Positions 10,084 to 51,332 of a stretch of DNA of 64,000 nucleotides are shown piece after piece. The stretch is from Zancudomyces culisetae HAW-14-8 (Eukaryota; Fungi; Kickxellomycota), in the NCBI GenBank assembly GCA_052426225.1, contig JBNJNM010000011.1, forward strand, positions 1,054,001 through 1,118,000, given 5' to 3'. The number at the start of each line of letters is the position of its first letter. The first letter of the stretch is position 1. The position numbers were made by a program, and so were the translations under genes. The notes below the pieces were generated by a model that did no database searches, had not been told where the DNA came from, and saw only the letters and a program-made list of their open reading frames with translations.

Positions 10084-12024
10084 TCAAACACTGATACGTA
10101 TTTTTTCAGCCCTAAAAGAGCGTGCACTTCGAATCCAATAAGATTGACGTGAGCATCGTGTAGAGGTAAAACTCGAACAGCAAACCTTTTCATGCTGCTA
10201 CGAGCGACACTAAACGTTTGATTTCGAACACTATGTGATATTTCAATTACTGGTTTTTTGCGGAGATCTTTTGATAGAGCCTGTTAACTCTTCTAGGTTT
10301 AAGCATATTTTATTCAGTTATCAATATTTTTCTATTTTGTACTACTATTTATGTGTAATGAGAACTTTTTATCCTCAACGAACATGCAAACAAATATCAC
10401 CCAAATTGGACAGGAAATCTACGAAGTATGGACCTGGCTGATCGGTTATATCTTTGTAAAACCCACATACCACCCGAATACCAGTTCAATGTGAAAGGTG
10501 GGAGTTAGTTGAAAAGCACAAATGATCAGTAAAACTCAGAGGGTTTGATCAATTGAAGTTGTCTGGGGTGCATATCAAGCACACAGTTACGATTAGTAGT
10601 ATATCGAGCTTCAAGCTTATTTATAGTTTATGTGGTTTTGTAACAAATTAACAATCTACCTAAAAAAAGATGTAGTGAAGTATTGTGGAGTTAGTTGTGT
10701 TTGTGACTCGATTTAGTATGAAGTTTATCACTTTTTTTTGGTTAAACTTTTGTGATAACCCCGTTTTCTATAAAATAATAGTAAAACGAGTTAATATAGC
10801 ACATTTCTTTTAATTTTGAGTATTGAGATATTACTAGTCGTATTATACCTTGGAGGTGAGTATTTAGAGACTGGAGTAGAAGATAAATGCTCTATTCGGT
10901 ATTTGGTTAACCTCTTGGTTTACACTTTTACTGTTGGATGAAATAATAAAGTGTGTTGAAAAATGGAAAACCAGATACTAGTACACTTTAAAGTTGCTTT
11001 ACTTCAATTACACAAAACTATAGTATCAAAGTTACCTTCACCTCCTTGAATGCTAAAACACAAAAAACAATATGACAAGGAATTAAAACAGAGTTAATAC
11101 TTACATTGTTAGTTGGTGATGATATTGTTATTACACAGTTAATGGTGAGGTGATATTAAACAGTTAATCAGTGTTGTAGCTTAGTATGCTGATACTTGAG
11201 GCTATACAATTTTTAGTTTGTGTATTTCATGGTTTAACAAACACATTGAATAGACCCAGACATTCAATGTTTATTTACTCCAGTTGGCTTCAGTTTGTGT
11301 GTTCATGTATGCTATTGTAAACCCCATTCTAATTTCTTGTTCCAGCTTAGTAACATCCGAGTCATTTACTCATTATTGAAAATGTTAATACTAGCTTTGA
11401 ATATGTAAATATTCATATCGAGCTACCTTGTGTATGTGTGTCAGTTGGTTATTATTCTTCAAGTTCAAAAAGGTGATAAGTGCTGTTTTTATGACTGTGT
11501 TTGTTAATACATGCATACTTGTTTACCTATTCACACCACAAACTAATAAGAATGGTTTATCACGTCAAACATCATGTTTATTAATAGATAGCTATACAAA
11601 CCATAGCGGTTCTTTTTGCTTACTTTTGTATGCGCTATTGTGTATTTTGTTTTGGGAAAATGGTTACGAATTCCAAACAGCTACCTATACAATATATCTA
11701 TAAATGCAGTATTAAAGATACTGTTGCAATATTAATACCCAACGCAAGTGTTATAGCGTGAAGTGTGGTGTTTGGCGATGAGGGTTGAATAAAAGCATAA
11801 ATAGCTAGAAACTCTTGAATGAACTCGTAAATATTACATTGTATTGAGTACAAGGATTGTATGGTGAATTAAAGCATACATCGTATATTAACCAGTTTGT
11901 AATAGAATAAAGAGAGCATATACTGCACTATTGTTTTTGGGATATACGAAGCAGAGAGACGCTCGTCTAGATAAAAAAAAAGTAAAAGTAACTTGAAAGA
12001 AGATGCCACATAAACATCGAAAGC

Positions 12025-12069
12025 TATATAAGGTGTGAAGAGTGTGAAAAGTGTGAAGAGTGTAACATA
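12025..12069 (+). promoter_or_regulatory. TATA box followed by ~3.5 copies of GTGTGAARA immediately before the ATG
   Basis: TATATAA at 12025-12031, then gtgtgaaga gtgtgaaaa gtgtgaaga gtgtaac. The same arrangement is present in copy B (46562-46606, - strand). Confidence 0.55.
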
Positions 12070-13608
12070 ATGGAAGATATTGGGTCATTTACAGAAGGGC
12101 CAAGCAGAGTAAAAAGGGCTAGAGAGGATAGTGTTGAAGGTGACAGCAGCATTTCTAGTGAAAAGATTAACTCTACAAGTAGGTGGAATGTGAATTATGT
12201 TACTGAGGATCTGTTGATGGGTGTAAACAAGCGCGAGTTAAAATATATATCTGATGGATATAAAATACGTAAATACAACAAAAGAGTCGGGTTTTATCTG
12301 GAGGAAATGGGCAAGAGAATTCGTAGAATTACCAAGGATGAATTAATGCAAAAGTTTTGCATCAATAAAATGCAATATGAAGAATTAACTAGGAATAAAA
12401 AGGTCAAACTCAACTACAACGGTACGGACACACTCGATGTCGAAGATACTCTCAAATCTAATGTTGTGTTATTAAATGGCAAACAAGTTTTATACGACAA
12501 TGAAGAATTAAGATTGGAAAACCATATAACTACATTTTCTGATGAACAGATATTCGGTATTAATAAAAATCTTCTGAAACAGGCAAAGAAAGAATTTATA
12601 AGGTTCATCAACGATGATAAAGATGAGAAAAACAAAATTAAATATATTCTGTCGTTGTCGTTGATGGACTTCTACGATAAACTAGAAGAGACCTATATTC
12701 GCTCCAAGAGTGAGCTTGAAAGTATTAATGAGGATGAAAATATGAGTTTTCCTGACTTGAATTATATAGAAACGCAATACGCTCATATAAACAAATCAAA
12801 AAAGTTGATTTTGACTCTACTTAACTCATGGGTACACAGTAGATACGAAATAACACAATTAATTAATGAGGCTAACACTAATGATATATATGAGTGTATT
12901 GTACCAGTATTAAGGAGCATGAGAGATAATAAAACGTATGAGTCTGTAGTAAACAGTTATGTACAAAACATACTGGATATCTTCAGATTTAATAAAAATA
13001 CCGAATTAAGTATAGCTCAGTTATATCTAAAAATAGATGATTCTGAAATTCATATTGTATCCGAAATTGATGTGGCGATATATAACGAGTTTGGAATTTA
13101 TTGTAACATCGCAATAGAGAACAAGGTGGACAGAAATACTGATGATTTTAACGGCGAAGCGCAGTTGATCGGAGAGATGTTTGTTTTGTACTTAAGCCAC
13201 CTTAAAAATAACAAGTCTTCCAGCACAGAAGAATCTAATGATGTTACTGTATACGGAATCCTTTTTCAAGGATTAATACCTTGTATTTACAAAGCAACTT
13301 TTAATGATGAGATAAAGACAAAAATAATACAAAATCTAAAGAACCATGAAAAGGGAGAGAAGGCCACACATGACTTACCGAATCTGGTAACAAAACTTGT
13401 GTTGTTTGAGAATGAACTAGACTTGATCGAAAATCCTGATTCGAGAAATTTTTCGTATTATATTTTGGAACTTTTAAGAAGGGTAATACTATATAGTACG
13501 AATACGTACTTGGTCTGTAATATAACCCCGAGCAATTCGGAGTTTACAGAAGATGATTATAGTATCGACACTATGGAACCCTCCCAGGAAATAATACGTG
13601 TAGATTAG
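12070..13608 (+). CDS. PD-(D/E)xK restriction-endonuclease-like protein A (Crinkler/CR-REase-like), 512 aa, intronless
   Basis: C-terminal SEIDVAI...IAIENK...EAQLIGEMF...VYGILFQGLIPCIYKATF fits D...ExK plus the AQLIxE helix and G-x-x-P-x-x-Y-K strand seen in fungal REase-fold proteins. Paralog of 45098-46561. Confidence 0.7.
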   Translation: MEDIGSFTEGPSRVKRAREDSVEGDSSISSEKINSTSRWNVNYVTEDLLMGVNKRELKYISDGYKIRKYNKRVGFYLEEMGKRIRRITKDELMQKFCINKMQYEELTRNKKVKLNYNGTDTLDVEDTLKSNVVLLNGKQVLYDNEELRLENHITTFSDEQIFGINKNLLKQAKKEFIRFINDDKDEKNKIKYILSLSLMDFYDKLEETYIRSKSELESINEDENMSFPDLNYIETQYAHINKSKKLILTLLNSWVHSRYEITQLINEANTNDIYECIVPVLRSMRDNKTYESVVNSYVQNILDIFRFNKNTELSIAQLYLKIDDSEIHIVSEIDVAIYNEFGIYCNIAIENKVDRNTDDFNGEAQLIGEMFVLYLSHLKNNKSSSTEESNDVTVYGILFQGLIPCIYKATFNDEIKTKIIQNLKNHEKGEKATHDLPNLVTKLVLFENELDLIENPDSRNFSYYILELLRRVILYSTNTYLVCNITPSNSEFTEDDYSIDTMEPSQEIIRVD

Positions 13609-13821
13609 TTGTTTTATACGTTTCATATATGATAACGTTTATTAAAAGCTTTTTTACTTTTTAGTATTATCATGTTTATTTAATAAACTGATAAAGCGAA
13701 AAAAATAAATGAGTATTGCCTGTTTCTTGACACAATGGAACACACAACACCCACCAAACACAAACGAAAATGGATAAAAACAAATGATCGTATTCTTGGA
13801 GCTTAAATCAAAGTACAGTGC

Positions 13822-16112
13822 CTACAATTTGCTCACTCCAGCACCACTTTTTCCTCCATGAAGTGTAGGTCCAATATACTTTTCAAAGAATCTCTTTCGA
13901 ATCTCATCTCCTGTCCCGTCTCTGTTCAATGGCTCATTCAATGCACGCTGCATGTAATCTTCGTACACCTTGCCGTCATACCGACCAAGACTTGAGTTGA
14001 GTTGTTCATCTGAAATACCAAATGCATCAACCAATGGTACAGCCTGAGGTCTGAGCAACTTGATTTTCTCCAGATACTCGCTCTCAAGATCAGTAACAAG
14101 TTGTGATGTGATTTGGCCGGACTCTGGTAGCGAGTACAATTCACCAGTGTTTCTGGTTAGGAATGACAGTGCAGAAACAGCAAACAACAGGTCCAATACT
14201 GGTCTCAGTGGTGAGTTTGAGGGAAGTCTATTGATAAACCTGCTGAAATACAGACACACAATGTATTCGGAATGAGCTGTACAAACCTGCTGTGAGGTAA
14301 CGAGTAGATCCTCAAAGCTTTCACCTTTGACGTGAATTCTTTCTGTCATGTTGTTTACCATACATACAAATCTATATGCCAGTATGTCAAGAAGAACTGA
14401 GTTGTTGTTAGCAACTTGTTTTGAGCTAAGATTATTCCATGAGTACGCCCCCTTATTCGATGCTCCATTATTTGCAAACTGTCTCATTACATTTGTTGTG
14501 TCATTTTTTTCTACTTCTTCGCCTTTAGAGACACCGTTGGCAGCCTTTACCAAATACTTTGTTGTTTGCTGTGCCAATACATAGTTATCTCCCTCCCAAA
14601 TAATATTGGGATAGATATCAGTAAAAAACTCGTTCAATCCTGAGAACTGTGAGAATCCGTGTCCTCCACACAAGTGACGGCATGTATCTACTCCGTACAC
14701 AGCTGTCTCGGATGACCATCGCTTCAATCCGCAGCTTACAGCGTGCATTTCTTTCAATAAACTAAAATCACCAGAAGCAATGGCGGCTGTGCACTTTATA
14801 TATTGTTCAAAAAACTCTACTGACATACCCAGCATGGCATATGCTTTGGCCAACAACGGAATTAAACGATATTGAACAATTCCGTAGTCCAGTACTGGTG
14901 TTTCTGGCTTTCCTGCCTCTCCAAACTGTCTACGAACAGCAGTGTACCTGGTTGCCACTGTTACAGCCTTTGCAAGCTTTTCGCCCATATTTGAGGCTAT
15001 ATGTGCTCTTACCTCGACCATAGTTCCATACGTAACTCTTGGGTCAATGTTTTTTGGACGTGTAACTACTCCATTTCTTGAAACAGTAATGTATCGTTGC
15101 AACAGATTAAAACGTGGTATTCTAACTCTATCCAGACTCAAAAAGCCATTATCCATCGTATTGAATCCAAATTTGGGACCAATATCGCCGACTGTAACTC
15201 CAGGGAATGGTTTATGATCAACTGTAGATCTGATAGGTACCACAAATGGGAATATTCCATAGTTTTTTCCTTTCACAATAAGCTGGGCAATTACACAAGC
15301 ATGGGTGGACGAAATTCCAAGTGATCCTATCCACCACTTTGTTGACGTCAATGTTGGCGAGTTTATTTCAAACTCGTCAGTTTCCTCGATAAAGGTTGCA
15401 GTGGTCTCTAACGATCTGATATTTGAACCATGGCCCATTTCAGTTTGTGCATAACACCCAATGATTCTGTAATCCAGAGCCGGCTTCAAAAATACCTCTT
15501 TTTGTTCTTCTGTACCCTGTTTCTCAAGTGTTGGAATAAACATTCCTCTGGTAAGATCGTACTAAAAAAATATTAATAATCATAATCGTATTACAAAGTA
15601 TTCAAAATGTTTTTTTTGCATACAAATATTGACAAGTTTAGAGGCTTACTGGTCCTTGAGGTCCAAATGACCCGCTAAATGCCATGATATCTTCCTTTGT
15701 AATGGTTCCTTCTCTATGATATTTATGAATATCGAATAAGTTTAGGTTTACCGAGACTATACATACTTTTAAATAATAAAATACTAGTGTGCCTCCTATA
15801 AAAAGGAAAATGCTGAACAGGAAAAAATAAACAAAAGTGATGCACATACCTCAATAGCTGAACCAAGCGAAGTTCCTGCTTGAAACAATGATCCAATTTT
15901 TCCACTCTGCTTAAGTGGTAAAAGTTTTCCATGCCAAAAATTTCTGGTTCGGCGCGCATCATTTTCAAAAGTTTTTCCCTAGTTTCCAGCTTTTTTTTGC
16001 CAAAAACAAATGTCTCCATCTCGTTTGGAGAAAAAGTCGCTTTCCTGCGCTCATTTTCCAGTGATGTTGCTGTGTTTGGCTCAGCAGGCTTCAAGTGAGT
16101 TGGAAATAACAT
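13822..16112 (-). CDS. Peroxisomal acyl-CoA oxidase copy 1; exons 16112-15850, 15713-15650, 15561-13822
   Basis: Motifs GCYAQTEMGHGSN, KWWIG, GDIGPKFG, CGGHGF, WEGDN. C-terminal PTS1 SKL. Two GT-AG introns restore ...LLREGTIT...GPQGPYDLTRGMF. Confidence 0.96.
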
Positions 16113-17178
16113 TATTTTTTCGTTCTCAGGTTGGAATAAATGTCTCAGCTATTCTTTTCTGGGTTTGCTCGAGTTTTTTTTTTCTTTTTTGTAGAAGAAA
16201 CTCTGCTTTTATATTAACTTTTCTGTTTTATACTTTTCATTATTGAGACATACCCGAGTTGTTCAAATTGACATTGGTAGCTTGGTTCACATTTTTCTTT
16301 GCAACTCCCCCCTTTCATTTCATTTTTTAATAGTTTCAATTTGACTTATCTCTGCATGTGATTTTAGTGGTTTTTGACTCCAGGCCAATGCAGTTCTATC
16401 TTTTTTCAGTTTCACAAGCTTATTTAGTATAAAGCGATTCAGTTTCCCTGAACTATTCTCGTTCTTATGAAGCATAAACTAATTTCATGTGTAGAAAGGT
16501 ATGATTAAAGCTAGAAAAAAGCTGAAACAACCCTCAATACCGGATAAAAAAAATTTTGTTCACATGTATTCCAAAGTAATGTTAACTTGCCTCAACATAA
16601 GCTATTCGGCCTTGGAATTACATTGTCTTTTACTTTTTATTTTGTAAAAAAACAGCGAGTAGCTCTATCTACTTGCGGACTTGAAAAATTAACCACATGT
16701 ACGAGTTTACAACATTAGTGATACAAAGTAATGAAACAAAAGTGCTTTGGTACAGTTCGACAATTTAAGGCTCGAGCTCAATCCAAGACAAATGTTCTGC
16801 TTTTTCTATAGCCGGTAAACTAAATCACGATCTGATGTGTTCTGAATCCCCCTGCCTTATTAACTGACGGTTATAGAAACTTAGTTTTTTTTGTGTCTTT
16901 TATGGAACAGGGTGGTGCACTAACCCGTTCTTGAAAAAAATGAAGTATTTGTGCCTATCTATATTTAAAAGAATCAGACCTAATCATAAGTCTTATAAGT
17001 AACTGTTTATACAATTACGTATAAAGCAAATATATGCCTATACATTGTGGGAATGTGTATGGTACCGCTGGGCTTCCCCACTTTCTATTATTAATAATAA
17101 TAATCTCATAAGAACAGAGCTATGCGTGCTATACTAAAGCAAAACATGCATCACATAAAAATCGTAATATTGCCATAA

Positions 17179-17238
17179 TGGATATTGTAATGAATATTGT
17201 AATGAATATTGTAATGAGTGCTGTAACGGATATTTTAA
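17179..17238. repeat. Degenerate 12-bp tandem repeat (TGAATATTGTAA) x ~4-5
   Basis: tggatattgtaa tgaatattgtaa tgaatattgtaa tgagtgctgtaa cggatattttaa. Confidence 0.7.
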
Positions 17239-17731
17239 AGGGTGTCATCATGTAGTTTTAGCCTGCTCTGAAATAGCATTGCTATGAAACACCTTGCAGA
17301 GTAGTTTCTCCTTTTTTGCTAATCCAATTTGAAGCTATTATAAATGAAATCTAATCAGATGACCAAACATTAAAATTTTCTGGAGTCCTATTTGCCCAAT
17401 ACCCACCCAAACAATCAAAACGTTGAGTGCCCATTTATTATTTTAACAAACGCTGGGGTGGGCTTCGTCGCTCATTGGCAAATGGGAATTTGTTTATGTC
17501 GGGTGTTATCAATTGCGTGTATTAAAAAATTCAATGAAAATTTTTTTTGCCAAACAAATATAACTGTCAAGCTGCAACAAGACTGAACTCAAATACATTG
17601 AGAAATAAGATAGGAAGAAACAGTAACTGAATCTTGATGACTCTTTTATCGAGTTCGTATTTTTCTACTCTCTTATATCACTTTTTTTAGTAAATAGGTT
17701 TATAACCAGAAATAGCGTACTTCTATTTTCC

Positions 17732-18583
17732 ATGTCTCTAAGAGCGGTGAGTAGCCTGAAAAAATCGGCGACCAAGGGGTTGCCTTCAATAAAAAATCAT
17801 AATGTCGCGGACGGGGCCAGGTCTTCGATTTTCAAGAACCAAATCAGAATGTTTTCCGAATCAGAACCGAAAAGTAAAAAGATCGGTTTTGGAGTATCGA
17901 AAAAGACGACGAAAACAACCGTAGCTGGATCCTTTCCGAGAGGAATATCTGGAAAGGATATCGAAAGTAGCCCTTATAATCTGAATATCAAATTGCCCCA
18001 GTGGGCATATGCTTCGTTTTTTGCTATGGATCGACCACTGCTGGATGTTGATGGATTCAGGGAATCCGTAAAGATCAGTCACGAATACAGTCGATGGATG
18101 AAAAAATCGCCACAGCTCACCCAGGAATCACTGATCCCAGAGCTTATAAGGCTTGGTCCTTTTGCCGAGGCTTTATACGATGTGAGGACTAACACGAAGG
18201 CTGGATCGGTAGCAGGAGATATGGAACTTGGTGCAGCGGAAGTAAATGAGATAGTTCAGGAGTTTTTCGATTCATTTGATCGTTCGTCCTATGGGTCTAA
18301 GAGCATGCTGTTGGGAAGGAGCGTACTTCGTACCTTGAATGTCTCTGGAAGTAGGTACATAAATAACATTACCTTTCCTACATTCAAACTCTTAGCGAAC
18401 ACAAGCATTCGAAAAGTTCATACTGCAAGAAAGTCAGATCTCTATGTTGGATTGATCCCAAAGAGTTTCAATAAATACGAACTTTCAAGTGTGCTTAGGA
18501 AAAAGAAGAAGAAGATGAACAAACATAAATTCAGAAAGCTGAGGAAGCGTACCAGAGCACTTAGAAGACGTCTTGGCAAATAG
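17732..18583 (+). CDS. COX24: Mitochondrial small-subunit protein mS38 / COX24-like
   Basis: Basic, Ser-rich N-terminal presequence. C-terminal signature SVLRKKKKKMNKHKFRKLRKRTRALRRRLGK. Confidence 0.85.
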   Translation: MSLRAVSSLKKSATKGLPSIKNHNVADGARSSIFKNQIRMFSESEPKSKKIGFGVSKKTTKTTVAGSFPRGISGKDIESSPYNLNIKLPQWAYASFFAMDRPLLDVDGFRESVKISHEYSRWMKKSPQLTQESLIPELIRLGPFAEALYDVRTNTKAGSVAGDMELGAAEVNEIVQEFFDSFDRSSYGSKSMLLGRSVLRTLNVSGSRYINNITFPTFKLLANTSIRKVHTARKSDLYVGLIPKSFNKYELSSVLRKKKKKMNKHKFRKLRKRTRALRRRLGK

Positions 18584-21039: not shown

Positions 21040-21256
21040 TTCAGCGCTCAGAGATCAGCCTGGTGGGCTACTTATAAATTTTGTGTATTCAGCACAACGG
21101 AAAACAACTCGAATTGTGGGTTTATTATGTCGTTTATTTGTTTTTCTAGGTGAATTCAACTTTAATAATACTACTTTCTCAAGGTCAGTCAAAATTGCAA
21201 TAATAATGAGCCTTGGAAGGCAAAAATTGGTGGGTACAAAAAAAAACGAACAGGGA

Positions 21257-24376: not shown

Positions 24377-25040
24377 TGTCTTGAATTTTATTTGTTACTA
24401 TACCACTTATTAAATAGTAAAGAAACTATAATTGGAAAGAGATGAGTTTGTTTTTGGTATTCCTATTTTTTGAAAAAAGGATTTAAACTACAACAATTTT
24501 TTGGTGGGGCAAATAAACAAAATTTTAGCTGTAAATTAAATTTTAGTCAGTATTTTTTCATTTGAATTTGGTACGTAATCATTTCGTTTGCATTGTATTT
24601 TTTCGGAAATAGAGGGGTGGGTGGGATTATTAAAAAAAGCTCTATTTTAACTGGGCCTTGCTAACCAGCTCGCAGATTTGAGGGGCCAATTTTAACCCCG
24701 ATTTTTATTTTGGATTTTTTCATCTGAGCATGTATTAAAACAGACTTAGCTAGTACGAACTAGGATGCAATCAATAAATAATAAAAAGAACGCTCAATGC
24801 CATAACAGTCACTTTGTAGGTCTTTGGTACATACACATGCATTATCGTGTGTAGAACATATAGAATGGACAATACGAGCGTCCACACTTAATAAAGCTCC
24901 GTACGTTAGGCTGGCGGATGTTTGGGATTCTTTTATCATTTTTGGTTGTGCAGCTAGATATATCACATATACACTACCACGCAACGTCTATTTGAACAAA
25001 GCCTGTATATATCGAGATCAAAAGCGCGCAGGTGAAAAAA

Positions 25041-25106
25041 TAAACTGTCTTGCTAATATACACAAGTACTACTAACAAATAAACTTCGGTATTGAACTCA
25101 AAAGAT
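25041..25106 (+). repeat. Direct repeat copy 1 (66-bp core; weaker similarity back to ~24997)
   Basis: taaactgtcttgctaatatacacaagtactactaacaaataaacttcggtattgaactcaaaagat; 65/66 identical to 28168-28233. Confidence 0.9.
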
Positions 25107-25689
25107 TAACTGTGAAGCTGTTAAAAAAAAAATCAAAGTTAATATAAAATGGTTGTCATGAATGCATTCAGCGAATTAAAATATTTTAGAATTGAACTTT
25201 CAAAAATAAAACAGGATCTTCAAGAGGTCTAGAAGCGGTTTGAAATATTTCTTGCTAACCTTATGAACTATTTCTCTCAATCCGACTCGATGTAAGTCGG
25301 ACGAGCTAGCAAAGTTTCCTCTCTTAAAGATGCTTTAATTGATATATTTTAAATATTTTAATAGTATACTATCGAGGATTATCGAGATTGCGGATGCCGA
25401 GACTAAAGCATTAAACAATTATTTAATCCTCAATACCGCTCTCTAAAGTTGAATGTTTCCTATAGAATTATACAAGTTTCTTTGATACTATGCAGAATTG
25501 TTTTTTGTAGTTTTATGTTGTATTTATTTAATAAATTTATCGAGATAAAAAAATATAACATGTTTATTAAACAAACTCAATATGAAAATAAGGGAGAGTA
25601 TTAAGGTTATGAAATTAGCCTGGCTGGGATAACAGAAATTAGTTAAATCAAGAATACACTTTTCGCTTAGGTTCATTTCGGCCTATCGA

Positions 25690-27655: not shown

Positions 27656-28167
27656 ATAGGATGAGTTTAGATTATAGATTGTTTTTTTTTAGAAACTTTT
27701 TATTTTCTAAATAATTTTTTATTCTACTGAAAATAATGACATCCTTCAACCAACACCCATGAGTATAGATTTCATAGAGGTGTAGTGTGGTGTAAATGCT
27801 TAACGTCCTACTTGATAGCTTTTTCTACCAAGTATCACACAAGACGGGTCAATTTCTATAATATTTCACTCTACTATATTATTATTAGCTTCTGAAAAGG
27901 ACAATCTGTTAACTAATTCACAATAAACATATACAAACTAACTCTATAAAACACATCCAATAAAATAACCAATAGGCCATGACGAATCTAAGTTAAAGTT
28001 TTCTAATCGACAAAATGACGGACAAGAAGTGGTTAGATAATGTTTAAGGCCATTTTTGTAGTTTTATATGGTAGTTAATATATAAATACTTTCAGCAAAA
28101 GAATATTGCAACACTTACCCCAGCAAAGTCAGCGTATATAAATGTCAAAAGTGTGCGTGTGCAAAAT

Positions 28168-28233
28168 TAAACTGTCTTGCTGATATACACAAGTACTACT
28201 AACAAATAAACTTCGGTATTGAACTCAAAAGAT
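28168..28233 (+). repeat. Direct repeat copy 2
   Basis: Matches 25041-25106 with one mismatch; offset 3127 bp. Confidence 0.9.
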
Positions 28234-29645
28234 AGTAACTGGTTTACTAAAAATGATGTTGATGTGTGTTATGTAGAAAATAATATTAAATTATATATCC
28301 ATATATCGCTTGGGTTTTTAGCGAGTTGGACCTGGGTGTTTGAAATGGCTTTTGCTGCTTGTATTCAATCACCTTTTACCTCAGATGTGTTTTTTACACC
28401 AAACTGTAAACTTTTTACGAGAATAATAATAGGTGATAACACCCCCCCTGTGGAAAGAAATAGACAGATAACTAGATTGGTTGTTGACAGTACACAGCCT
28501 CAATCACAAGTGTTATATACACTGATATCCACTACTGTTAGATATTACCTGTTGTTCGTTTGCTTGTTTGCTTGCTTGCTTGTTTGTAAGATGTAGTACA
28601 GAAACTTGGAATCTTATGGTTAAATAAGTGGTGCTAGTGCTATACCGTGTATCCGAAAAATAGTATAGCACTTCCTCATTTTATTGGGCTTTTATCCCAC
28701 TTTATTCACTTGATTCTGTAGCATACCAAGAAAAAGAAAAAATTCAAAACTTACTAATAGCCCAAAAAAAGTATTATAAACACTGTAGTGAACCCTCGTT
28801 AAGTTTTTTCTTTCAAAAAACTTCTACTACTGCACGTTTTCGGTTAATATCGTATCCCACCACCTTTAATTTACATTTTCTTTATACAAAGCATCATTTT
28901 ACATACAATTTACAATTCAAAGTTGGTTCAGATTTAACAGTGTACCTATACCAGCCCCCCCCCCCTCCCAAAACCTCACTCCCTCTTCTCTCCGGAAAAT
29001 TCTAGAAAACCTAAAAAATATTATATTAAAAAAAGCAGCACTGATAATGGTACTACAAGCAGGTATACGCTTATAATATTGCATTACACACTCTGACTAT
29101 TCACAGTGAAATTTCTCTACAAATTATCTAGAAAAAAATGAATTTCCCTTTTCTACCCCCCACTTACCTCTGTTGATTAAAACAAACCCGGATATTTTTA
29201 CAAGTATGGTTGTTATTCCTAATTAGTAGATATCTTTTGTTTTGTTTTTGTTAAATTTACATTTAGCAAATATAATTCGAGTTTTAACCATGTAAGCAAC
29301 CATCAATGACGGGTAATTACTCAATATTGACTTTTTTGCAATCAACATTGCTGTAGTATTGCTAAAAAAAACGGAATATTGAACACTTGAATACAAAAAA
29401 GTAGGGCAAAAAAAGGAATATTGTGTTAGAAACACCTAAAATCAATTCATAGAGAGGGGCGTTCATTTAAAAATAAGCATTTTCGATGACAGTATAGACG
29501 ATAACACAGTCCGAACTCCATATAATAGGTATTTAAACAGGTTAAGTGCCGTTTGTGAACCTCAATACCAACACTGGCGTCCAAATAAAAAAAATTAAGA
29601 ACAAAAAATATCACACAGCACAAAAAGTCGTAACTAGTAGTAAAC

Positions 29646-42537: not shown

Positions 42538-42563
42538 ATAATAATAATAATAATAATAATATT
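42538..42563. repeat. (AAT)n microsatellite upstream of acyl-CoA oxidase 2
   Basis: Run of ~8 aat units. Confidence 0.8.
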
Positions 42564-42616
42564 GATTTAATTACTGCTGTTCAAGTAAACCACACCAAGA
42601 CTATTTGGAACAAAAA

Positions 42617-44857
42617 ATGAGCCTTCCTCTTGAAAAATTCAAAGATACTTCACTAACTAAAGAAACACTCGCAAGTGAAAGAAAAAAGGCGAGGTTTTCA
42701 CCAAATGAACTTGGTGATTTTATTTATGGCAAGGAATATCGCGAAAGAGTTGCAAGAATACTCAAAGTTCTCAGAGCTGAACCAGAGATATTCTCTAACG
42801 AGGATATATACTTTCTGAATAGAAGTGAGCTGATAGAGAGATATTTAAAGCGAGAACGTAGACTTGTTGAACTCTACAGGTAGTTGTTGTTAACATTATA
42901 CTTGCTCTTATCCAATGTCCATATATATATATATATACCTGTACCATTTTCACTAATATAGTATTACGGTCTGAGATCAATACACCTTGGTATTAGAAAT
43001 TAAAATATAATAATTTAACTCAACTTTTACTTTTAAAAAAATAGAAGTGGTAAAATACAGAATGAAGATATTGAATTCACATTCAAGCTTTACGGCACTA
43101 TGGGCCCTTACACTTTATCACGTGGAGCATTTTTACCCGCAGTTGAAAAACAATCAAACCCAGAGCAAATTGAAAAGTTTGTTAAACCAGCAGAAGCATA
43201 CAGAATCATTGGATGCTATGCACAAACCGAACTGGGTCACGGATCTAACGTTCGTGGGATGGAGACCACCATTACCTTTGTTGAGGAAACTGACGAATTT
43301 GAGGTTAACTCGCCGAGTTTAACGTCGGCAAAATGGTGGATTGGTACTATGGGTGTTCATGCAACACACGCGGTTGTGATGGGGCAGCTGATTATCAAGG
43401 GAAAGAATTACGGTGTCTTCCCTATTGTTGTGCCCTTGCGATCATTGGAAGATCATAAACCACTTCCAGGTGTGTATATTGGTGACATTGGACCCAAATT
43501 TGGGGTAAACGTAATGGATAATGGATATCTATACCTCGACCATGTGCGCGTACCACGAATTAACCTGTTACAAAAATACATAAACGTTTCACGAGATGGG
43601 ACGTTTAGTCGGATAAAAAGTGCCGATCCCCGAATGACATATATTTCAATGGTTCAGTTGAGAACAGGAATAGCCTCTGGGATGGGTGTTCTTTTGGCAA
43701 GAGCCGTTACTGTTGCCACCAGATACACTGCTGTACGCCGACAGTTTGGAAAGGTAGGAAAACCAGAAACGCCAGTAATAGATTACGAAATTGTCCAGCA
43801 TCGAATAATCCCACTGATTGCTCAGGCCTATGCCATGATCGGAATGACTCATGAACTTAAGAATCAATTTGTAAGAACCACAGATGCAATCGCAAAGAAT
43901 GACTTTAGTTTGTTGAAAGAAATGCACGCAACAAGTGCTGGTCTAAAGAAGTGGAGTACAACAATAAGCATCTATGGAATTGATACCTGTCGTCATGTAT
44001 GTGGTGGCCATGGATACTCGCAGTTCTCTGGATTGAACCAACTGTTTACAGATAATTATCCTGGTATTATATACGAAGGCGATAATTACATTCTTGCTCA
44101 GCAAACCACAAGATATGTACTAAATATTGCTAGGGATTTACTTAAGGGGAGCAGTGACATTGAAAATAATGATACAACCAGGTATATGCAGCGATTCATC
44201 ACTAAGAGTAATGTCAGTCCTAGTACATCAGCGTTGACTTGGGTTGGAAGAACTGCCAGCCAGTTAATTTCAAACAGAACCACACTTATTGATCTTCTGG
44301 CATATCGCCTGGCATCTATGACCTCAGATTTGGCACAAAAAATACACTTTAAGGGACATAAGTTTGAAGATTCTCTTGTAACCGCTCAAGCGATATCAAT
44401 GGCACATTCAGAGTTTATAGTCGCCCTGTACTTTGACCGCTACCTCAAAACACTTCCACAAAGTTCACCACTAGCACCAATCCTCGATTTGATGTTTGTC
44501 ATATCGGCGCTGACTTTCTTGACCAGAAATATTGGAGAGTTACTGCTATTGCCAGCAGAAGCACAAATAAACAAGCAATTTATTGAAGACCTGGAAAGTG
44601 AGTATGCCAAAAGGATAAAAGAAGCTAGAGAACAAGCTGTACCACTCGTTGATGCATTTGATATTCCTGATGAAATATTAAACTCGAGTTTGGGCCGTTA
44701 CGATGGTGATGTATACAGAGACCATGTCAGGAGAGCATTACAAGAACCGCTTAATAGTGAGGAACTCGGAAATGAAATCCGTACAAAATTCTACAACGAG
44801 TATACACGGACAGTACTTTCTAGTGGAAATAACATCATGGGAAGTGCAAAGCTTTAA
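42617..44857 (+). CDS. Peroxisomal acyl-CoA oxidase copy 2; exons 42617-42879 and 43045-44857
   Basis: GCYAQTELGHGSN, KWWIG, CGGHGY, YEGDN; PTS1 AKL. Its single intron is at the same position and phase as intron 1 of copy 1. Confidence 0.96.
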
Positions 44858-45029
44858 CTAACATTTGAATGTACGGCTTTTTGCATCTGACTTACCCTTG
44901 AAACAACTTACTGGTATATCTGTTACTCCTCAACCTTTTATAACCGGCTTTATTGGAAAGTGAATGAGATGTGTATCCTAGACACATCAAAAACAAGTAG
45001 GTAGATGTTGTGTAAACATTTGGTTTTTA

Positions 45030-48000
45030 AAGATGCTATTAAGATATAAAATATATAAAACGAATAAAAAACTAATTCAAAACTTTTCATGTCATATTCA
45101 TGATTGAGCGATATTGCACACCAAGTGTGAATTGGAGCCATGCAAGACAACTCTTCTAAACAACTCTATAATAAAGTAGGAATAATTACGAGCACCTGGG
45201 CTCGTAATTAAGTTCTCTATGCCTTTAAAAAGCACAAGCTTTGATACGACATTCGATACTTTTTCTGTAATCTCCTCGTAGTTCTGATACTTTTTATGAT
45301 TTTTTATGATCAGCTCTGCTGTTTTACTGTCGAAAGTAGCTTTATAAAACGTTGGTCTTAAACCGATAAAAACAATCCCGTAAACTGTTTTTTCCTTTAA
45401 CCTATCCAAATTGATTTTATTATCCACAGTGAATTGGCTCATATATACGGAGAACATCTCTCCAATAATCTGCGCTTCAGCGTTTTTGATATTGTATCCT
45501 GTGTCTGTTTTGTCTTCGACACCGAAGCAATAGTTAGTTACATTTTCTTTGAATAGACTCACATCCACTTGGGATGATAGGCTTACGTTATTGGTGTTAA
45601 TCCTGAGATTTAAGCTACCAATGTTTATACTGTTGTTTTTGTTATAGGAAAAGATTCCTAATATGCTTTTTACGTAGTCATCAATGACTTTTTCATCCTT
45701 TTTATTGCCTGTCATAGCCCTTAGTGTTGGTAGAATACATTGATATGAGTCGTTTCTGTCAGCTTCATTCATTAGCTCGATCATTTCATCTTTGTTTTTT
45801 ACTCTTGAGTTCAGAAGAGTCAAAATTGATTTTTTTGATCCGTTTATGTGGGTGTATTCTGCTTCTATGTTATCTAATTTAGGAATACACAGTATTTTAT
45901 TCCCATTAATCCTTTCAAGCTCACTCTTGGAACGAATATAGGTCTCTTCTAGTTTATCGTAGAAGTCCATCAACGACAAAGACAAAATATATTTAATTTT
46001 GTTTTTGTCCTCCTTTTTCATACCAAAGAACTCCATAAATCGCTTTTTAGCTTTATTGAGAAGTTCTTCATTGATACCAAACAACTGCTCATCAGAAAAT
46101 GTAGTTCTAAAATTTTCCAATATTAGTTCACCATTGTCATATATCAGTTGTTCAGAATCGATCAAGACAACATAATACTTTAGTATTGCTTCAGCATCAT
46201 CTGCGCCCGTACCGTTGTAGTTGGGGTTGAGCTTTTTGTTTTTATTTAATTCTTCATATTGCATTTTATTGATGCAAAAATTTTGCGTTAATTCATTCTT
46301 GGTCATTCTACGAATTCCCTTGCCCATATAATCCCGATATCGACTGATTTCTTTGTCACCTATACACTCGACTTGTAAATCGTCTGGATATAATATCTCG
46401 TGCTCAGGAAATGTTGAAAAACAAGCTTCAATACTCTCCACAGTCCATGTAATTGTAGAGTCAAGCTTTTCACTAGAAATGCTGCTATCACTTTCGAAGC
46501 TATCCTCTCTAGCCCTTTTTACTCTGCTTGACCCTTCTGTAAATGACCCAATATCTTCCATTCTGTTACACTCTTCACACTTTTCACACTCTTCACACCT
46601 TATATAGCTTTCGATGTTTATGTGGTATCTTTTTTCAAGTTACTTTTACTTTTTTTTTATCTAGACAAACGTCTCTCTGTTTCGTATATCCCAAAAACAA
46701 TAGTGCAGTATATGCTCTCTTTATTCTATTACAAACTGGTTAATATACGATGTATGCTTTAATTCACCATACAATCCTTGTACTCAATACAATGTAATAT
46801 TTACGAGTTCATTCAAGAGTTTCTAACTATTTATGCTTTTATTCAACTCTGATTGTCAGAAACCACACTTCACGCTATAACATTTGCGTTGGGTATTAAT
46901 ATTGCAACAGTATCTTTAATACTGCATTTATAGATACATTGTATAGGTAGCTGTTTGGAATTCGTAACCATTTTCCCAAAACAAAATACACAATAGCGCA
47001 TACAAAAGTAAGCAAAAAGAACCGCTATGGTTTGTATAGCTATCTATTAATAAGCATGATGATTGACGTGATAAACCATTTGCATTAGTTTGTGGTGTGA
47101 ATAGGTAAACAAATATGCATGTATTAACCAACACAGTCATAAAAACAGCACTTATTATTACTTGTTGAACTTGAGCATTATTACTAACTGACACACATAC
47201 ACAAGGTAGCTCGATATGAATATTCACATATTCAAAGCTAGTATTAACCTTTTCAATAATAAGTAAATGACTCGGATGTTACTAAGCTGGAACAACAAAC
47301 TAGAATGAGATTTACATTAGCATTCATGGATACACAAACTAAAGCCAACTGGAGTAAATAAAGATTAATGTCTGGGTCTACTCAATGTGTTTGTTAAACC
47401 TTGAAATACACAAACTAAAAATGACATGGTAAAAAAAATGACATGGTCTCAAGTATCAGCATACTAAGCTACAACACTGATTAACTGGTATAATATCTTT
47501 CCACCATTAACTGTTGGATAACAATATTATCACCAACTAACAATGTAAATATTAACTCTGTTTTAATTACTTGTCATATTGTTTTTTGTGTTTTAGCATT
47601 CAAGGAGGTGAAGGTAACTTTGATACTATAGTTTTGTGTAATTGAAGTAAAGCAACTTGAAAGTATACTAGCAACTGGTTTTCCATTTTTCAACGCGTTC
47701 TATTATTCTATCCAACAGTAAAAGTGTAAACCAAGAGGCTAACCAAATACCGAATAGTGCATTTCTCTTTTATTCCAGTTTCTAAATACCCACCTCCAAG
47801 GTATAATACGACTAGTAATATCTCAATACCCACAATTAAAAGAAATGTGCTATATTAACTCGTTTTACTATTATCTTTATAAAAATGGAACCACACAAAA
47901 GTTTAAACCAAAAAAAGGTGACAAATCTCATAATAAATCGAGTCACAAACACAACCAACTCCACAATAATCCACTACATCTTTTTTTAGGTATATTGTTA

Positions 48001-48272
48001 ATTTGTTACAAAACCACATAAATCATAAATAAGCTTGAAGCTCGATATACTACTACTCATAATTGTGTGCTTGATATGCACCCCAGACAACTTCAATTGA
48101 TCAAACCCTCTGAGTTTTACTGATCATTTGTGCTTTTCAACTAACTCCCACCTTTCACATTGAACTGGTATTCGGATGGTATATGGTTTTTACAAAGATA
48201 TAACCGATCAGCCAGGTCCATACTCCGTAGATTATCTGTCCATTTTGGATGTTATTTGTTTGGAACAGTTGA
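45030..48272 (-). mobile_element. Repeat cassette copy B (inverted relative to 10375-13650)
   Basis: Base-by-base similarity to copy A across the non-coding leader. The near-identical spurious ORFs 11428-11703/46928-47227 and 11888-12088/46543-46743 reflect this. Mobility is inferred. Confidence 0.55.
45098..46561 (-). CDS. PD-(D/E)xK restriction-endonuclease-like protein B, 487 aa, intronless
   Basis: SQVDVSL...FGVEDK...EAQIIGEMF...VYGIVFIGLRPTFYKATF. Shares MEDIGSFTEG and KNKIKYILSLSLMDFYDKLEETYIRSKSELE with protein A. Confidence 0.7.
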   Translation of the reverse strand: MEDIGSFTEGSSRVKRAREDSFESDSSISSEKLDSTITWTVESIEACFSTFPEHEILYPDDLQVECIGDKEISRYRDYMGKGIRRMTKNELTQNFCINKMQYEELNKNKKLNPNYNGTGADDAEAILKYYVVLIDSEQLIYDNGELILENFRTTFSDEQLFGINEELLNKAKKRFMEFFGMKKEDKNKIKYILSLSLMDFYDKLEETYIRSKSELERINGNKILCIPKLDNIEAEYTHINGSKKSILTLLNSRVKNKDEMIELMNEADRNDSYQCILPTLRAMTGNKKDEKVIDDYVKSILGIFSYNKNNSINIGSLNLRINTNNVSLSSQVDVSLFKENVTNYCFGVEDKTDTGYNIKNAEAQIIGEMFSVYMSQFTVDNKINLDRLKEKTVYGIVFIGLRPTFYKATFDSKTAELIIKNHKKYQNYEEITEKVSNVVSKLVLFKGIENLITSPGARNYSYFIIELFRRVVLHGSNSHLVCNIAQS

Positions 48273-48821
48273 CAGCACTAAAAACAGTGCCACGATTGAA
48301 ACATAGAATTTGCAGCTAGAACTAGTTCTGACATTGAAATGAAATTGACACATGAAAAAGACAATTTTTCTTTCCATTTTAATATTTTATTTCCACACAC
48401 TCTAGATTTCACAGACCAAGTGTTGTTTCATAATTTTCATCCTGGAACGCGTAGATTTTTTTAGAGAGGATAAAAAAAAAACTAATCCCGGTTAAAGATG
48501 CTCTAAAAGCGACCAAACAGAACTTCACTGCATACGAATACACAGCCATTCATTTGTTGCTGCTACTCCTCATTCCGGGATCGTGAATGTTTAAGTCGAG
48601 TTAAAATTACATCTATATTGCGTAGATTTACAGTTTGTAGAATATTCAATATATTTGATAAGCGTTGACTATAAAACCGGATATTCAAGTAGTAATCATT
48701 ATCTCTATTCAAAATCATTCATATCTTTCTTTCAGTTTTCAAGAAAGAATCTAAACACACAAAATAGTATATCAAAAACAAACCATTACAGTTAATTTAC
48801 AAACGAGAAAAAACCACAAAT

Positions 48822-50897
48822 ATGCTGTTTCCTAAGGAGCTAAAAGTGCCAGAACCCTCGCCACAGACAACCCTTAACAATGAAAGAAAAAACGGCTTCT
48901 TTCCTGTGGAGGACATGGGATTGTTTATTAACGGCGAAGAGGCTGTTGCGCGAAGAGAGAAGGTGCTGAAAATTGTACGCGCGGAACCAGAAATCTTTGG
49001 TATGAAAGAGATATACCATATGAGTAGAACAGAAAAAATTGAACACTTATTGAAGCAGGAGCTTAGAATGGTAGAGTTACTAAGGGAAGATAAGCTTACC
49101 TCAGATGATATGCTTTTGGGTATGTCTACAGTTATTGGACTTTCAGGACCATATCGTTTAACCAGAAGCATGTTTATCCCAACACTTGAGAAACAGGGTA
49201 CAGAAGAACAAAAAGAGGTATTTTTGAAGCCGGCTCTGGATTACAGAATCATTGGGTGTTATGCACAAACTGAAATGGGCCATGGTTCAAATATCAGATC
49301 GTTAGAGACCACTGCAACCTTTATCGAGGAAACTGACGAGTTTGAAATAAACTCGCCAACATTGACGTCAACAAAGTGGTGGATAGGATCACTAGGTGTC
49401 GCATGTACCCACGCTTGTGTAATTGCCCAGCTTATTGTAAAAGGAAAAAACTATGGAATATTCCCATTTGTGGTACCTATCAGATCTACAGTTGATCATA
49501 AACCATTCCCTGGAATTACGGTCGGCGATATTGGCCCCAAGTTTGGGTTTACTGCTATTGATAACGGATTCTTGAGCCTGGATAAAGTTAGAATACCACG
49601 TTTTAATCTGTTGCAACGATACATTAATGTTTCAAGAAATGGAGTAGTTACACGTCCAAAAAATATCAACCCAAGAGTTACGTATGGAACTATGGTTGAA
49701 GTGCGGGCAAGGATAGCTAGAAATATGGGAAACGTATTGGCTCATGCAGTGACAGTGGCAACCAGGTACACTGCTGTTCGTAGACAGTTTGGAGAGGCAG
49801 GAAAGCCAGAAACACCAGTACTGGACTACGGAATTGTTCAATATCGTTTAATTCCGTTGTTGGCCAAAGCATATGCCATGCTGGGTATGTCACACGAATT
49901 TACTGCACAGTACAGGAATTGTGTTGCTGCCATTGAGGCAAACAATTTTGAATTTCTTAAGGATATGCACGCTGTAAGTTGTGGATTGAAGCGATGGTCA
50001 TCCGATACGGCTGTGTACGGAGTAGATACATCTCGCCACTTGTGTGGAGGACACGGATTCTCACAGTTTTCTGGGTTGAATGAACATTTTGCAGAAAACT
50101 ACCAGACAATGATCGTTGAGGGTGATAACTACCTTTTGGCCCAGCAAACATCTAGATATTTGATTAAAATGATAGACAGTATAAAGAAAGGCGAAAAAGT
50201 TTCATCGAATGATACTGTTGATGCGTTGTGTCACTATGTCAGTACAAACAAATCAGCAAACGTCTCGAATTTCTACTCATGGGTAGGGAAGTCGTCCCGG
50301 CAAATATCTTCTGACAAACAAGCATTGCTTAGTTTGCTAGGGTTCAAATTTGTATCAATTGCAGAAAAGATGTCAGATGACGTTTATATTAAGGGTCATT
50401 TATTTGAAGATAAACTGGTAGTGGCACAAAGCCTCGCTACATCACACTCCGAGTTTATCGTCTGTTTGTATTTTGATAGACATATTAACAAACTCCCCTC
50501 AAACTCACCACTGAGACCTGTATTAGACCTGTTGTTTGCTGTTTCTGCACTGTCATTCCTAACCAGAAACACTGGTGAATTGTACTCGCTACCAGAGTCC
50601 GGCCAAATCACATCACAACTTGTTACTGATCTTGAGAGCGAGTATCTGGAGAAAATCAAGTTGCTCAGACCTCAGGCTGTACCATTGGTTGATGCATTTG
50701 GTATTTCAGATGAACAACTCAACTCAAGTCTTGGTCGGTATGACGGCAAGGTGTACGAAGATTACATGCAGCGTGCATTGAATGAGCCATTGAACAGAGA
50801 CGGGACAGGAGATGAGATTCGAAAGAGATTCTTTGAAAAGTATATTGGACCTACACTTCATGGAGGAAAAAGTGGTGCTGGAGTGAGCAAATTGTAG
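48822..50897 (+). CDS. Peroxisomal acyl-CoA oxidase copy 3, intronless
   Basis: Uninterrupted 691-aa ORF with GCYAQTEMGHGSN, CGGHGF, VEGDN and PTS1 SKL. Confidence 0.97.
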   Translation: MLFPKELKVPEPSPQTTLNNERKNGFFPVEDMGLFINGEEAVARREKVLKIVRAEPEIFGMKEIYHMSRTEKIEHLLKQELRMVELLREDKLTSDDMLLGMSTVIGLSGPYRLTRSMFIPTLEKQGTEEQKEVFLKPALDYRIIGCYAQTEMGHGSNIRSLETTATFIEETDEFEINSPTLTSTKWWIGSLGVACTHACVIAQLIVKGKNYGIFPFVVPIRSTVDHKPFPGITVGDIGPKFGFTAIDNGFLSLDKVRIPRFNLLQRYINVSRNGVVTRPKNINPRVTYGTMVEVRARIARNMGNVLAHAVTVATRYTAVRRQFGEAGKPETPVLDYGIVQYRLIPLLAKAYAMLGMSHEFTAQYRNCVAAIEANNFEFLKDMHAVSCGLKRWSSDTAVYGVDTSRHLCGGHGFSQFSGLNEHFAENYQTMIVEGDNYLLAQQTSRYLIKMIDSIKKGEKVSSNDTVDALCHYVSTNKSANVSNFYSWVGKSSRQISSDKQALLSLLGFKFVSIAEKMSDDVYIKGHLFEDKLVVAQSLATSHSEFIVCLYFDRHINKLPSNSPLRPVLDLLFAVSALSFLTRNTGELYSLPESGQITSQLVTDLESEYLEKIKLLRPQAVPLVDAFGISDEQLNSSLGRYDGKVYEDYMQRALNEPLNRDGTGDEIRKRFFEKYIGPTLHGGKSGAGVSKL

Positions 50898-51332
50898 GCA
50901 CTGTACTTTGATTTAAGCTCCAAGAATACGATCTTTTAGCTGTTTTTTGTTCTATTTTATTTTTTTTATATGACTAACATCGCCCGCCATTTCATATCAC
51001 TGATAAAGTTAGAACCGATTTTGCTCATCAGAATTTCTTCACACAGGTTTGGAGTCGTTAGCTTTGGAATTGCTTTATAACATTTTCTTCCTCTCTTCAC
51101 TAGGAATAACAGAAAATAAAAAAAGTGTTTAACTCTCCTAAATCAACTAATTAATTTATCGCCTTTATTTACACAACTCTCCTCCTCTCCAAAAAAAGAT
51201 GAGCCAGAGTATTACTGCGTTTAAAAAAGTAATACAAGTACAATTTCTGGAGTGCAACTTTGCCACAAATAGAGGATATACAGAAAAATTCTAATATTTC
51301 AAAGATGTTGGTTGGTAATTGTATACTAATTC

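Follow-up and report, generated by a model that had tools for sequence, protein, structure and literature searches.

The 64,000-bp stretch of the Zancudomyces culisetae HAW-14-8 genome analyzed here (C11:1054001-1118000; hereafter, the window) contains two genes for predicted nucleases of restriction-endonuclease type, REase A and REase B, each placed tail-to-tail with an acyl-CoA oxidase (ACOX) gene. These genes probably, at roughly 60% in our estimate, form part of a conflict-type family of nucleases diversified through ectopic gene conversion, and their adjacency to ACOX genes would be a by-product of position. The initial annotation of the window described leader and REase A converging on ACOX1, and ACOX2 converging on REase B and its leader, followed by ACOX3; every feature of that layout is present, with small corrections to the coordinates. 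The window lies within a 27.1-Mb, 25-contig genome, probably the HiFi assembly described in PMC12611240. Z. culisetae, a member of the Harpellales, inhabits the guts of mosquitoes. For comparison we used strain COL-18-3, represented by a public annotated short-read assembly (GCA_001969505.1).

Nuclease cassettes within and between strains

A search of the HAW-14-8 genome with REase A returned 31 protein matches. Among these, 8 or more copies are intact and some 10 are decayed, which places the family at 18 copies or more on at least 7 contigs. The intact copies are A and B themselves, C11:999309, C8:125233, C15:1786049 and three in a row on C9 (C9:408550, C9:414361 and C9:417972); decayed copies were found on C21, C6 and C13, the sub-family boundaries on C13 being drawn from 3.4-kb loci. 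Each unit spans about 3.2 kb and consists of a 1.7-kb non-coding leader followed by an open reading frame (ORF) of 490-520 amino acids (aa). The leader stands upstream of every intact copy on C8, C9, C11 and C15, where it is 87-94% identical to the leader of REase A, and also precedes decayed copies, at about 70% identity. Among public proteins, no full-length homolog was found outside Z. culisetae.

Jukes-Cantor distances between the leaders of different copies are 0.02-0.11 and mostly 0.05-0.09. Within the ORFs, the same pairs of copies alternate between shared blocks with a synonymous difference (pS) near 0 and divergent blocks with a pS of 0.6-1.0; taken whole, the ORFs reach a synonymous divergence (dS) of 1-1.7, with ratios of nonsynonymous to synonymous divergence (dN/dS) of 0.24-0.66. 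The extremes are instructive: the ORFs of A and C11:999309 are 99-100% identical (98% as proteins) behind leaders that are only 91-95% identical, while REase B and C9:417972 are 97-100% identical in their 3’ halves and 48-88% identical in their 5’ halves. Taken together, these comparisons identify the ORFs as mosaics of old haplotype blocks, held under purifying selection behind a homogenised or constrained leader.

The comparison with COL-18-3 could be made at three shared loci, A, C8 and C15, as the B locus is not assembled in that strain. Across the three, the units are 55-97% identical between strains and the flanks 97-100%. Identity at the C8 locus is 98-100% in the flanks and falls to 68% inside the ORF; at the C15 locus the flanks are 99-100% and the unit 55-75% identical; and at the A locus flanks of 97-100% (about 99% on average) enclose a leader of 87-95% identity, with an identical junction at window position 10387. 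The COL-18-3 protein assigned by synteny to the C8 locus (P0001) is 91% identical to the C15 copy of the HAW-14-8 genome and 76% to its C8 copy, and the protein at the C15 locus (P0003) is at most 55% identical to any HAW-14-8 copy compared. The oxidases behave otherwise. ACOX1 is 99.6% identical to COL-18-3 protein P0034 over aa 121-627 and ACOX3 is 99.75% identical to P0046 over the 401 aa of the latter, so the ACOX mosaic predates the strain split. Since the units differ where their flanks are near-identical, and cassettes are found at different loci, these alignments indicate that cassettes were exchanged after the strains split and that the ACOX mosaics were not. The gene conversion proposed for the nuclease and ACOX families is real, and among the nuclease cassettes demonstrably recent.

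On the favored reading, the leader and a few conserved ORF blocks would supply the homology for ectopic gene conversion, and conversion would in turn keep the leader near-uniform while reshuffling old, diverged ORF blocks between loci and strains.

The two ends of the unit differ in kind. Five copies start at the identical first base, corresponding to 10387, and A and C11:999309 share this start although their flanks are mutually unrelated; this sharp 5’ end may point to a dedicated mobility step. The 3’ boundary, in turn, is fuzzy across copies, and neither a terminal inverted-repeat pair nor target-site duplications were found at the unit ends. The leaders are mostly oriented toward the 5’ end of the gene next to them. 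No whole-unit insertion polymorphism was seen at the three loci compared between strains, and the empty alleles anticipated at ACOX-flanking nuclease sites did not appear at A, where the unit occupies the same junction in both strains. Two COL-18-3 contigs, LSSK01000327 and LSSK01000352, carry nearly the same 11 kb (99-100% identical) and both end in leader A, a short-read redundancy at the repeat boundary.

Self-comparison of the window aligned 10387-12941 with 48262-45693 as an inverted repeat of 2590 bp at 86% identity, comprising the 1683-bp ORF-free leader and the first ~870 bp of each REase ORF. Leader A (10387-12069, plus strand; 1683 bp, non-coding) shares its sharp 5’ edge with the other copies, contains no ORF of 100 aa or more, and matched no RNA family in Rfam. 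Directly 5’ of the REase A ATG lies an array of 9-bp repeats (GTGTGAAGA-like; 12030-12063, plus strand), the length of which varies among the 8 copies. In 6 of the 8 the array is in frame with an upstream ATG, giving an extra cysteine-rich (C-x2-C)n extension of 27-37 aa; in unit A the upstream frame contains a stop, and in unit B the upstream ATG has been lost by mutation. The REase A ORF (12070-13608, plus strand; 512 aa) is followed by a conserved 3’ tail of the unit (13609-13660, plus strand), ~20-50 bp of which are common to all copies.

The REase B ORF (45098-46561, minus strand; 487 aa) encodes a protein 52% identical to REase A and near-identical to it at aa 1-40 and 185-215. Leader B (46562-48262, minus strand) is 92% identical to leader A, and its final ~200 bp are 97% identical to those of A and unlike all other copies, a variant private to A and B. 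Between leader B and ACOX3 is a pre-leader (48263-48619) that moves with units at other loci: positions 48263-48440 recur in the C9 array, and positions 48507-48619 correspond to a 113-bp remnant at the C15 locus. On the other side of the window, the 4.4 kb 5’ of leader A (5990-10386) has a single ORF of at least 100 aa, of 107 aa; it is 97-100% conserved between strains, and the COL-18-3 annotation places a ribosomal L26 gene there.

Nuclease fold and a relative on a killer-plasmid-like replicon

A model of the whole REase protein was poor (predicted local distance difference test score, pLDDT, 46), and we used instead a model of aa 230-500 of REase A built with distant homologs (pLDDT 81; predicted template modeling score, pTM, 0.80). 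The modeled domain has the alpha-beta-beta-beta-alpha-beta core fold of the PD-(D/E)xK nuclease superfamily. Comparison with 48,161 chains by VIA-align matched two human mitoribosomal large-subunit chains (Z 10.4 and 10.0 over 186 and 185 residues), which we take to be restriction-enzyme-like proteins, the BpuSI nuclease domain (Z 10.1, 153 residues), DrdV (Z 8.5, 132 residues), an HsdR fragment (Z 7.9, 128 residues) and NucC (Z 7.5, 163 residues); the lower rows are mostly restriction enzymes or Cas4-, RecB- and Hjc-type nucleases. A profile search with the family brought up some 25 distant proteins, 240-330 aa long, whose alignment falls on the C-terminal half. All 13 sequences of the family alignment share D334, K352 and Q365, with E350 at least 90% conserved, and in a second alignment of 30 distant homologs the E, K and Q are each at least 90% conserved. 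The residues of this motif (D334, E350-x-K352 and Q365; codons within 13069-13164, plus strand) sit on beta2, beta3 and alpha elements of the domain model. The PD-(D/E)xK fold initially suggested for both ORFs holds because the domain model, the structural matches to nucleases (Z 10.1 to BpuSI) and the conserved motif support it: as modeled, the C-terminal half of REase A and B has a restriction-endonuclease fold with an intact D..ExK..Q motif. The protein may be envisaged as one that would cut DNA in the nucleus.

REase A starts with MEDIGSFTEG... and has an N-terminal KRAR motif of basic character; a helical linker then joins its small alpha/beta domain (aa ~85-150) to the PD-(D/E)xK domain (aa ~290-480). 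The best structural match to the small N-terminal domain had a Z of only 3.7 and is not convincing, and this domain had no neighbour in the Atlas; no relative of the N-terminal half could be recognised. Searches with REase A and B matched no Pfam family and gave nothing usable with PADLOC, PHROGs or PDB profiles; one distant homolog had a sub-threshold Pfam match to HSDR_N_2 only. A connection to Crinkler proteins, raised in the initial annotation, was nonetheless borne out by structure. The Atlas neighbours of the domain are fungal clusters, in one of which, from Mucoromycota, 17% of members carry the Crinkler family PF20147, and a C-terminal REase-type toxin domain as in Crinkler effectors is present in the Z. 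culisetae proteins by fold and by these neighbours. The proteins themselves have neither a Crinkler/ubiquitin-like (Ubl) header (PF20147) by Pfam nor an LxLFLAK motif, and no hydrophobic signal sequence occurs at either candidate start of the ORFs.

The closest relative of the nuclear family lies within the same assembly. Contig C24 (116 kb, 25% GC) is a concatenate of a 26,032-bp unit that encodes a B-family DNA polymerase, an Rpb2/Rpb1-type RNA polymerase, a helicase, DUF5483 and a 1149-aa protein joining a GH18 chitinase to a NucA/NucB DNase. Because of this set of polymerase, helicase, DUF5483 and chitinase-DNase genes, C24 is, by gene content, a pGKL-type killer-plasmid-like replicon. It carries five identical copies of a 398-aa ORF (4017-5210 of the C24 stretch examined) that is 32% (tblastn) or 36% (genome search) identical to REase A over roughly aa 261-476; the other homologs are 14-22% identical. 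The leader has no detectable similarity to C24.

Two further homologs occupy comparable settings. One is on a 10-kb, 23%-GC contig of Boothiomyces (JADIIZ010000166), beside a DNA_pol_B_2 gene of protein-primed type, and the other is on an 87-kb metagenome contig (ERZ26273096), where multisubunit RNA-polymerase genes flank it on one side and, at a greater distance, a helicase gene on the other. Other distant homologs are nuclear (Conidiobolus, basidiomycetes and Selaginella), and some of those in fungal nuclear genomes are fused to Crinkler headers. Judging by the plasmid- or virus-like neighbourhoods, such elements may carry the nuclease domain recurrently. Capture of a plasmid gene by the nucleus seems the likelier direction, and the nuclear family would then have arisen by such a capture. 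We infer that the family serves or reflects genetic conflict, whether as a selfish, toxin-like or anti-plasmid gene.

ACOX neighbours and alternative explanations

All three oxidases of the window carry the full set of Pfam ACOX domains. ACOX1 (13822-16112, minus strand; exons 16112-15850, 15713-15650 and 15561-13822) has two introns and ends in -SKL; ACOX2 (42617-44857, plus strand; exons 42617-42879 and 43045-44857) has one intron, ends in -AKL and is the most divergent paralog; ACOX3 (48822-50897, plus strand) is an intronless gene for 691 aa ending in -SKL. ACOX1 and ACOX2 each have a first exon of 263 nt, so that intron 1 has the same position and phase in both. As initially reported, both nuclease genes end ~210-240 bp from an ACOX stop codon, the measured gaps being 213 bp between A and ACOX1 and 240 bp between B and ACOX2. 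Apart from the ~50-bp unit tail, these two spacers are unrelated.

Patchwork identity, likewise noted at the outset, is seen in the oxidases as well as in the blocks of near-zero and high pS of the nucleases: between ACOX1 and ACOX3, tracts of 97-100% alternate with tracts of 43-68%. The 3’ tract (13782-14281 against 50937-50438) is 95% identical overall, with sub-tracts of 97-100%, and extends ~40 nt past the stop; a second mosaic (14551-15552 against 50162-49161) is 88% identical overall and alternates between blocks of 100% and ~65%. ACOX2 is ~68% identical to either of the others in the self-comparison. The converted 3’ end of ACOX1 thus matches ACOX3, which has no nuclease unit downstream, rather than ACOX2, which has one and is 53-65% identical to ACOX1 at its 3’ end. 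We regard the ACOX1/ACOX3 mosaic as probable ordinary interlocus gene conversion, between paralogs 33 kb apart, older than the strain split.

With the intronless ACOX3 as query, ACOX-family sequences were found at seven loci: the three in the window, C9:412304-414115, C8:708662 and two on C10. In a tree of single large exons the four Z. culisetae ACOX paralogs formed a species-specific clade, the order within which is not settled outside the converted tracts; the tree did not resolve ACOX1 and ACOX2 as sisters.

Unit B is flanked by ACOX2 and ACOX3 as direct repeats, and sequence from this interval recurs elsewhere. The 3’ 1.35 kb of ACOX2 together with unit B is duplicated on C9 (86% over 5 kb; 99-100% in the ACOX part alone), and a 3.6-kb block of unit plus ACOX3 5’ sequence is also common to the window and C9. 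The C9 ACOX gene is a chimera, in which ACOX3 5’ sequence with its promoter region (96-100%) is followed by a ~350-bp deletion and then by ACOX2 3’ sequence (99-100%). The array to which it belongs (C9:407422-420526) reads leader 743-1677, unit, unit, chimera, unit, leader 1-727; it lies next to thymidylate synthase, and both of its junctions are present in COL-18-3. Its order is that of a circularly permuted insertion, as expected of an opened circle or a tandem fragment at a new site. A similar ACOX3::ACOX2 chimera, switching near ACOX3 position 49500, stands tail-to-tail with its unit at the C15 locus of COL-18-3; the HAW-14-8 C15 locus has no chimera and keeps the 113-bp remnant of the ACOX3 upstream region. 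The COL-18-3 contig concerned (LSSK01000006) has, relative to C15:1784549-1789012, 2.3 kb comprising another nuclease 3’ half and an ACOX chimera of 416 aa where HAW-14-8 has 1.1 kb of other sequence, between flanks 99-100% identical.

Recombination of ACOX2 with ACOX3 around unit B would yield exactly an ACOX3-5’::ACOX2-3’ chimera plus unit, either on the circle that is excised or, after unequal exchange, in the middle of the resulting duplication. A circle was probably excised around unit B, or an unequal exchange took place there, and C9 and, in COL-18-3, the C15 locus then presumably received copies of the chimera block. Accordingly read as passengers, the ACOX fragments beside units elsewhere would need no targeting of ACOX, and the position of unit B between the direct paralogs ACOX2 and ACOX3, with unit A beside ACOX1, would account for the adjacency in the window. 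The 5-kb and 3.6-kb blocks shared with C9 and the 100%-identical tracts of ACOX1 and ACOX3 are what segmental duplication with interlocus gene conversion leaves behind.

The association of units with ACOX does exceed chance for random placement (8 units, 7 ACOX-family loci, ~8,500 genes), but the adjacencies did not arise independently: they trace to the layout of the window and to the block copied from around unit B. Nor is the tie genome-wide. Half of the intact units (A, B and two on C9) adjoin ACOX; the other four adjoin unrelated genes (pyridoxal-kinase-like, thioredoxin-like, ribokinase-like, thymidylate synthase and others), and none of the five decayed loci with flanks read has an ACOX neighbour. 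The decayed copies examined on C13, C6 and C21 lie within repeats of at least 9 kb, head-to-head with genes for secreted, minisatellite-rich proteins that form a family. At these loci (C13:296000-312000, C6:160000-200000, C21:906000-922000 and C21:1252000-1268000) the secreted proteins are 750-1216 aa long with 21-27-bp minisatellites, and the host repeats are 88-97% identical between chromosomes.

Several observations weigh against a conflict-type family shaped by gene conversion. The uniform leader could equally reflect purifying selection on a function of its own. The sharp 5’ end common to units with unrelated flanks is unexplained by homologous recombination alone. The COL-18-3 assembly breaks, or may collapse, at these repeats, and some strain differences, such as an apparently missing unit on one of its contigs, could be assembly artefacts. 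Finally, the Foldseek check proposed for the fold succeeded only in part: it listed the same restriction-nuclease classes as VIA-align, yet none reached an E-value of 0.001, the best being 3e-3.

An ordinary, passive family would descend from the inverted duplication of one ancestral ACOX+REase pair, its pieces later homogenised by background gene conversion, and its nuclease would have a normal cellular role free of conflict; such a family seems to us rather unlikely. It would agree with the intact ORFs under purifying selection, with units A and C8 standing at the same loci in both strains, and with an intron position common to ACOX1 and ACOX2 that fits an old duplication. The ordinary genes in the 26 kb separating the two pairs, which encode COX24, Mpp10, a proteasome ATPase and Myb, TPR and RBBP4-like WD40 proteins, are undisturbed. 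A family of this kind would not be expected to number at least 18 copies, many decayed, on at least 7 contigs, to be without full-length homologs beyond the species while its nearest relative is plasmid-borne, or to differ by 3-45% between strains whose flanks differ by ~1% or less and to have moved cassettes between loci. The simple inverted duplication offered earlier as the alternative to homing is also incomplete as an account of the pairs, given their unrelated spacers and a tree that does not resolve ACOX1 and ACOX2 as sisters. As the order of the ACOX paralogs is unsettled outside the converted tracts, a single inverted duplication of an ACOX+REase pair may or may not have taken place. 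The housekeeping block also contains a direct repeat (24997-25112 and 28124-28241; ~118 bp, 86% identical) that brackets ~3 kb of it.

We consider it distinctly unlikely that the unit is a selfish element of a new kind, derived from a killer-plasmid gene, in which the nuclease makes breaks in or beside sister units, and repair by gene conversion, or circles that are excised and re-inserted, spread and reshuffle the cassettes and carry host genes along. Were this so, the same process would have helped to build both the species-specific ACOX expansion and the secreted repeat-protein family. The more general proposal of an autonomous mobile element, whose own nuclease breaks sister units or sites upstream of genes so that repair or circles copy the unit with its neighbours, is improbable. 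It draws on the sharp 5’ unit end, on dispersed copies whose leaders mostly face the 5’ end of a gene, on the permuted ends of the C9 array, on the co-amplification of two kinds of neighbour (ACOX and the secreted repeat protein) and on the rapid turnover of cassettes between strains. It is opposed by the fuzzy 3’ end, the missing inverted repeats, target-site duplications and insertion polymorphism noted above, and the fact that no transposase, integrase or reverse transcriptase was found by Pfam among the proteins of the window; homologous recombination alone explains most of the observations.

Two conventional classes of element were also considered and rejected. A Class II DNA transposon is contradicted by the lack of a terminal inverted-repeat pair, the fuzzy 3’ end and the lack of a transposase domain. 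Retro-copying, with the leader as a 5’ untranslated region (UTR) and some copies 5’-truncated, is not supported, as poly(A) tails are absent and the permuted C9 array accounts for the truncated leader there.

The ACOX-directed selfish element first proposed for the window, analogous to WHO, would have the nuclease cut ACOX and repair copy the nuclease gene with a replacement ACOX 3’ end, thereby driving conversion between paralogs. The intact nuclease motif, the similar spacing of the two tail-to-tail pairs, an ACOX1 3’ end that appears replaced to ~40 nt into the 3’ UTR, and ACOX fragments that are present or absent beside units between strains (at C9 and at C15 of COL-18-3) all lend themselves to it. 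We nevertheless dismiss it as very improbable, as that 3’ end matches the oxidase with no unit downstream, the ectopic fragments carry the ACOX3 5’ end and promoter at non-ACOX loci, ACOX1 and ACOX3 stayed nearly identical between strains while units turned over, unit A is fixed at one junction, the fold is not LAGLIDADG or intein-like, and half of the intact units and all five decayed loci read are away from ACOX. For the homing claim the outcome is negative, the link to ACOX being positional and not functional.

The conflict-type family that we favor offers an unusually clear and datable case of cassette exchange, with different cassettes at the same loci between flanks ~1% or less apart. 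With its nearest relative on a resident killer-plasmid-like replicon, Z. culisetae can be used to ask whether such genes are selfish, toxins or an anti-plasmid defence, and is suited as well to asking how leaders steer gene conversion and whether units promote duplication of neighbouring metabolic genes.

Comparison with known systems

REase (PD-(D/E)xK) toxin domains have been described in Crinkler/CR effectors (Zhang et al. 2016, summarised in PMC5289972). These domains resemble those of Z. culisetae in three respects: a restriction-endonuclease fold with a D..ExK core; a conserved N-terminal part followed by variable parts recombined between paralogs; and membership of a lineage-specific, multi-copy, fast-evolving family. 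The Mucoromycota cluster with Crinkler headers among the structural neighbours of the Z. culisetae domain extends the likeness. The Z. culisetae proteins differ in having no Ubl header, LxLFLAK motif or signal peptide and no fused NTPase (nucleoside triphosphatase) or kinase, and their recombination anchor, the 1.7-kb leader, is mostly non-coding. Nuclear Crinkler-type PD-(D/E)xK genes are widespread in fungi and almost unstudied beyond oomycete effectors.

Like the WHO/HO system (PMC7282813), the window has an endonuclease gene downstream of a metabolic gene with a replaced 3’ end, and gene conversion is involved. The nuclease fold is different, units occur beside more than one kind of host gene, the element does not bring the replaced 3’ end of ACOX1 with it, and host-gene fragments at other loci carry the 5’ end; nor were empty and filled alleles seen at the ACOX sites in the two strains, the B locus being unassembled in COL-18-3.

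The family is tied to the pGKL-type cytoplasmic linear killer plasmids through its closest relative, on a 26-kb replicon with polymerases, a helicase, DUF5483 and a chitinase-type toxin gene. Nuclear capture of pGKL-type killer-plasmid genes has a precedent in yeasts. In contrast to such captured genes, those of Z. culisetae are intact, amplified and under purifying selection, and their units have gained a new N-terminal half and a leader without similarity to the plasmid. To our knowledge, no PD-(D/E)xK gene is known in pGKL1 or pGKL2.

Cassette-type families diversified by ectopic gene conversion include Pneumocystis MSG, with its upstream conserved sequence, and Plasmodium var, with its ups regions. 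The Z. culisetae products are predicted intracellular nuclease-fold proteins and not surface antigens, and a single expression site is not indicated. In organization, the families are alike: here, as in MSG and var, variable bodies stand behind a conserved upstream sequence and a short N-terminus that is conserved as well, individual copies are mosaics, and repertoires differ from strain to strain.

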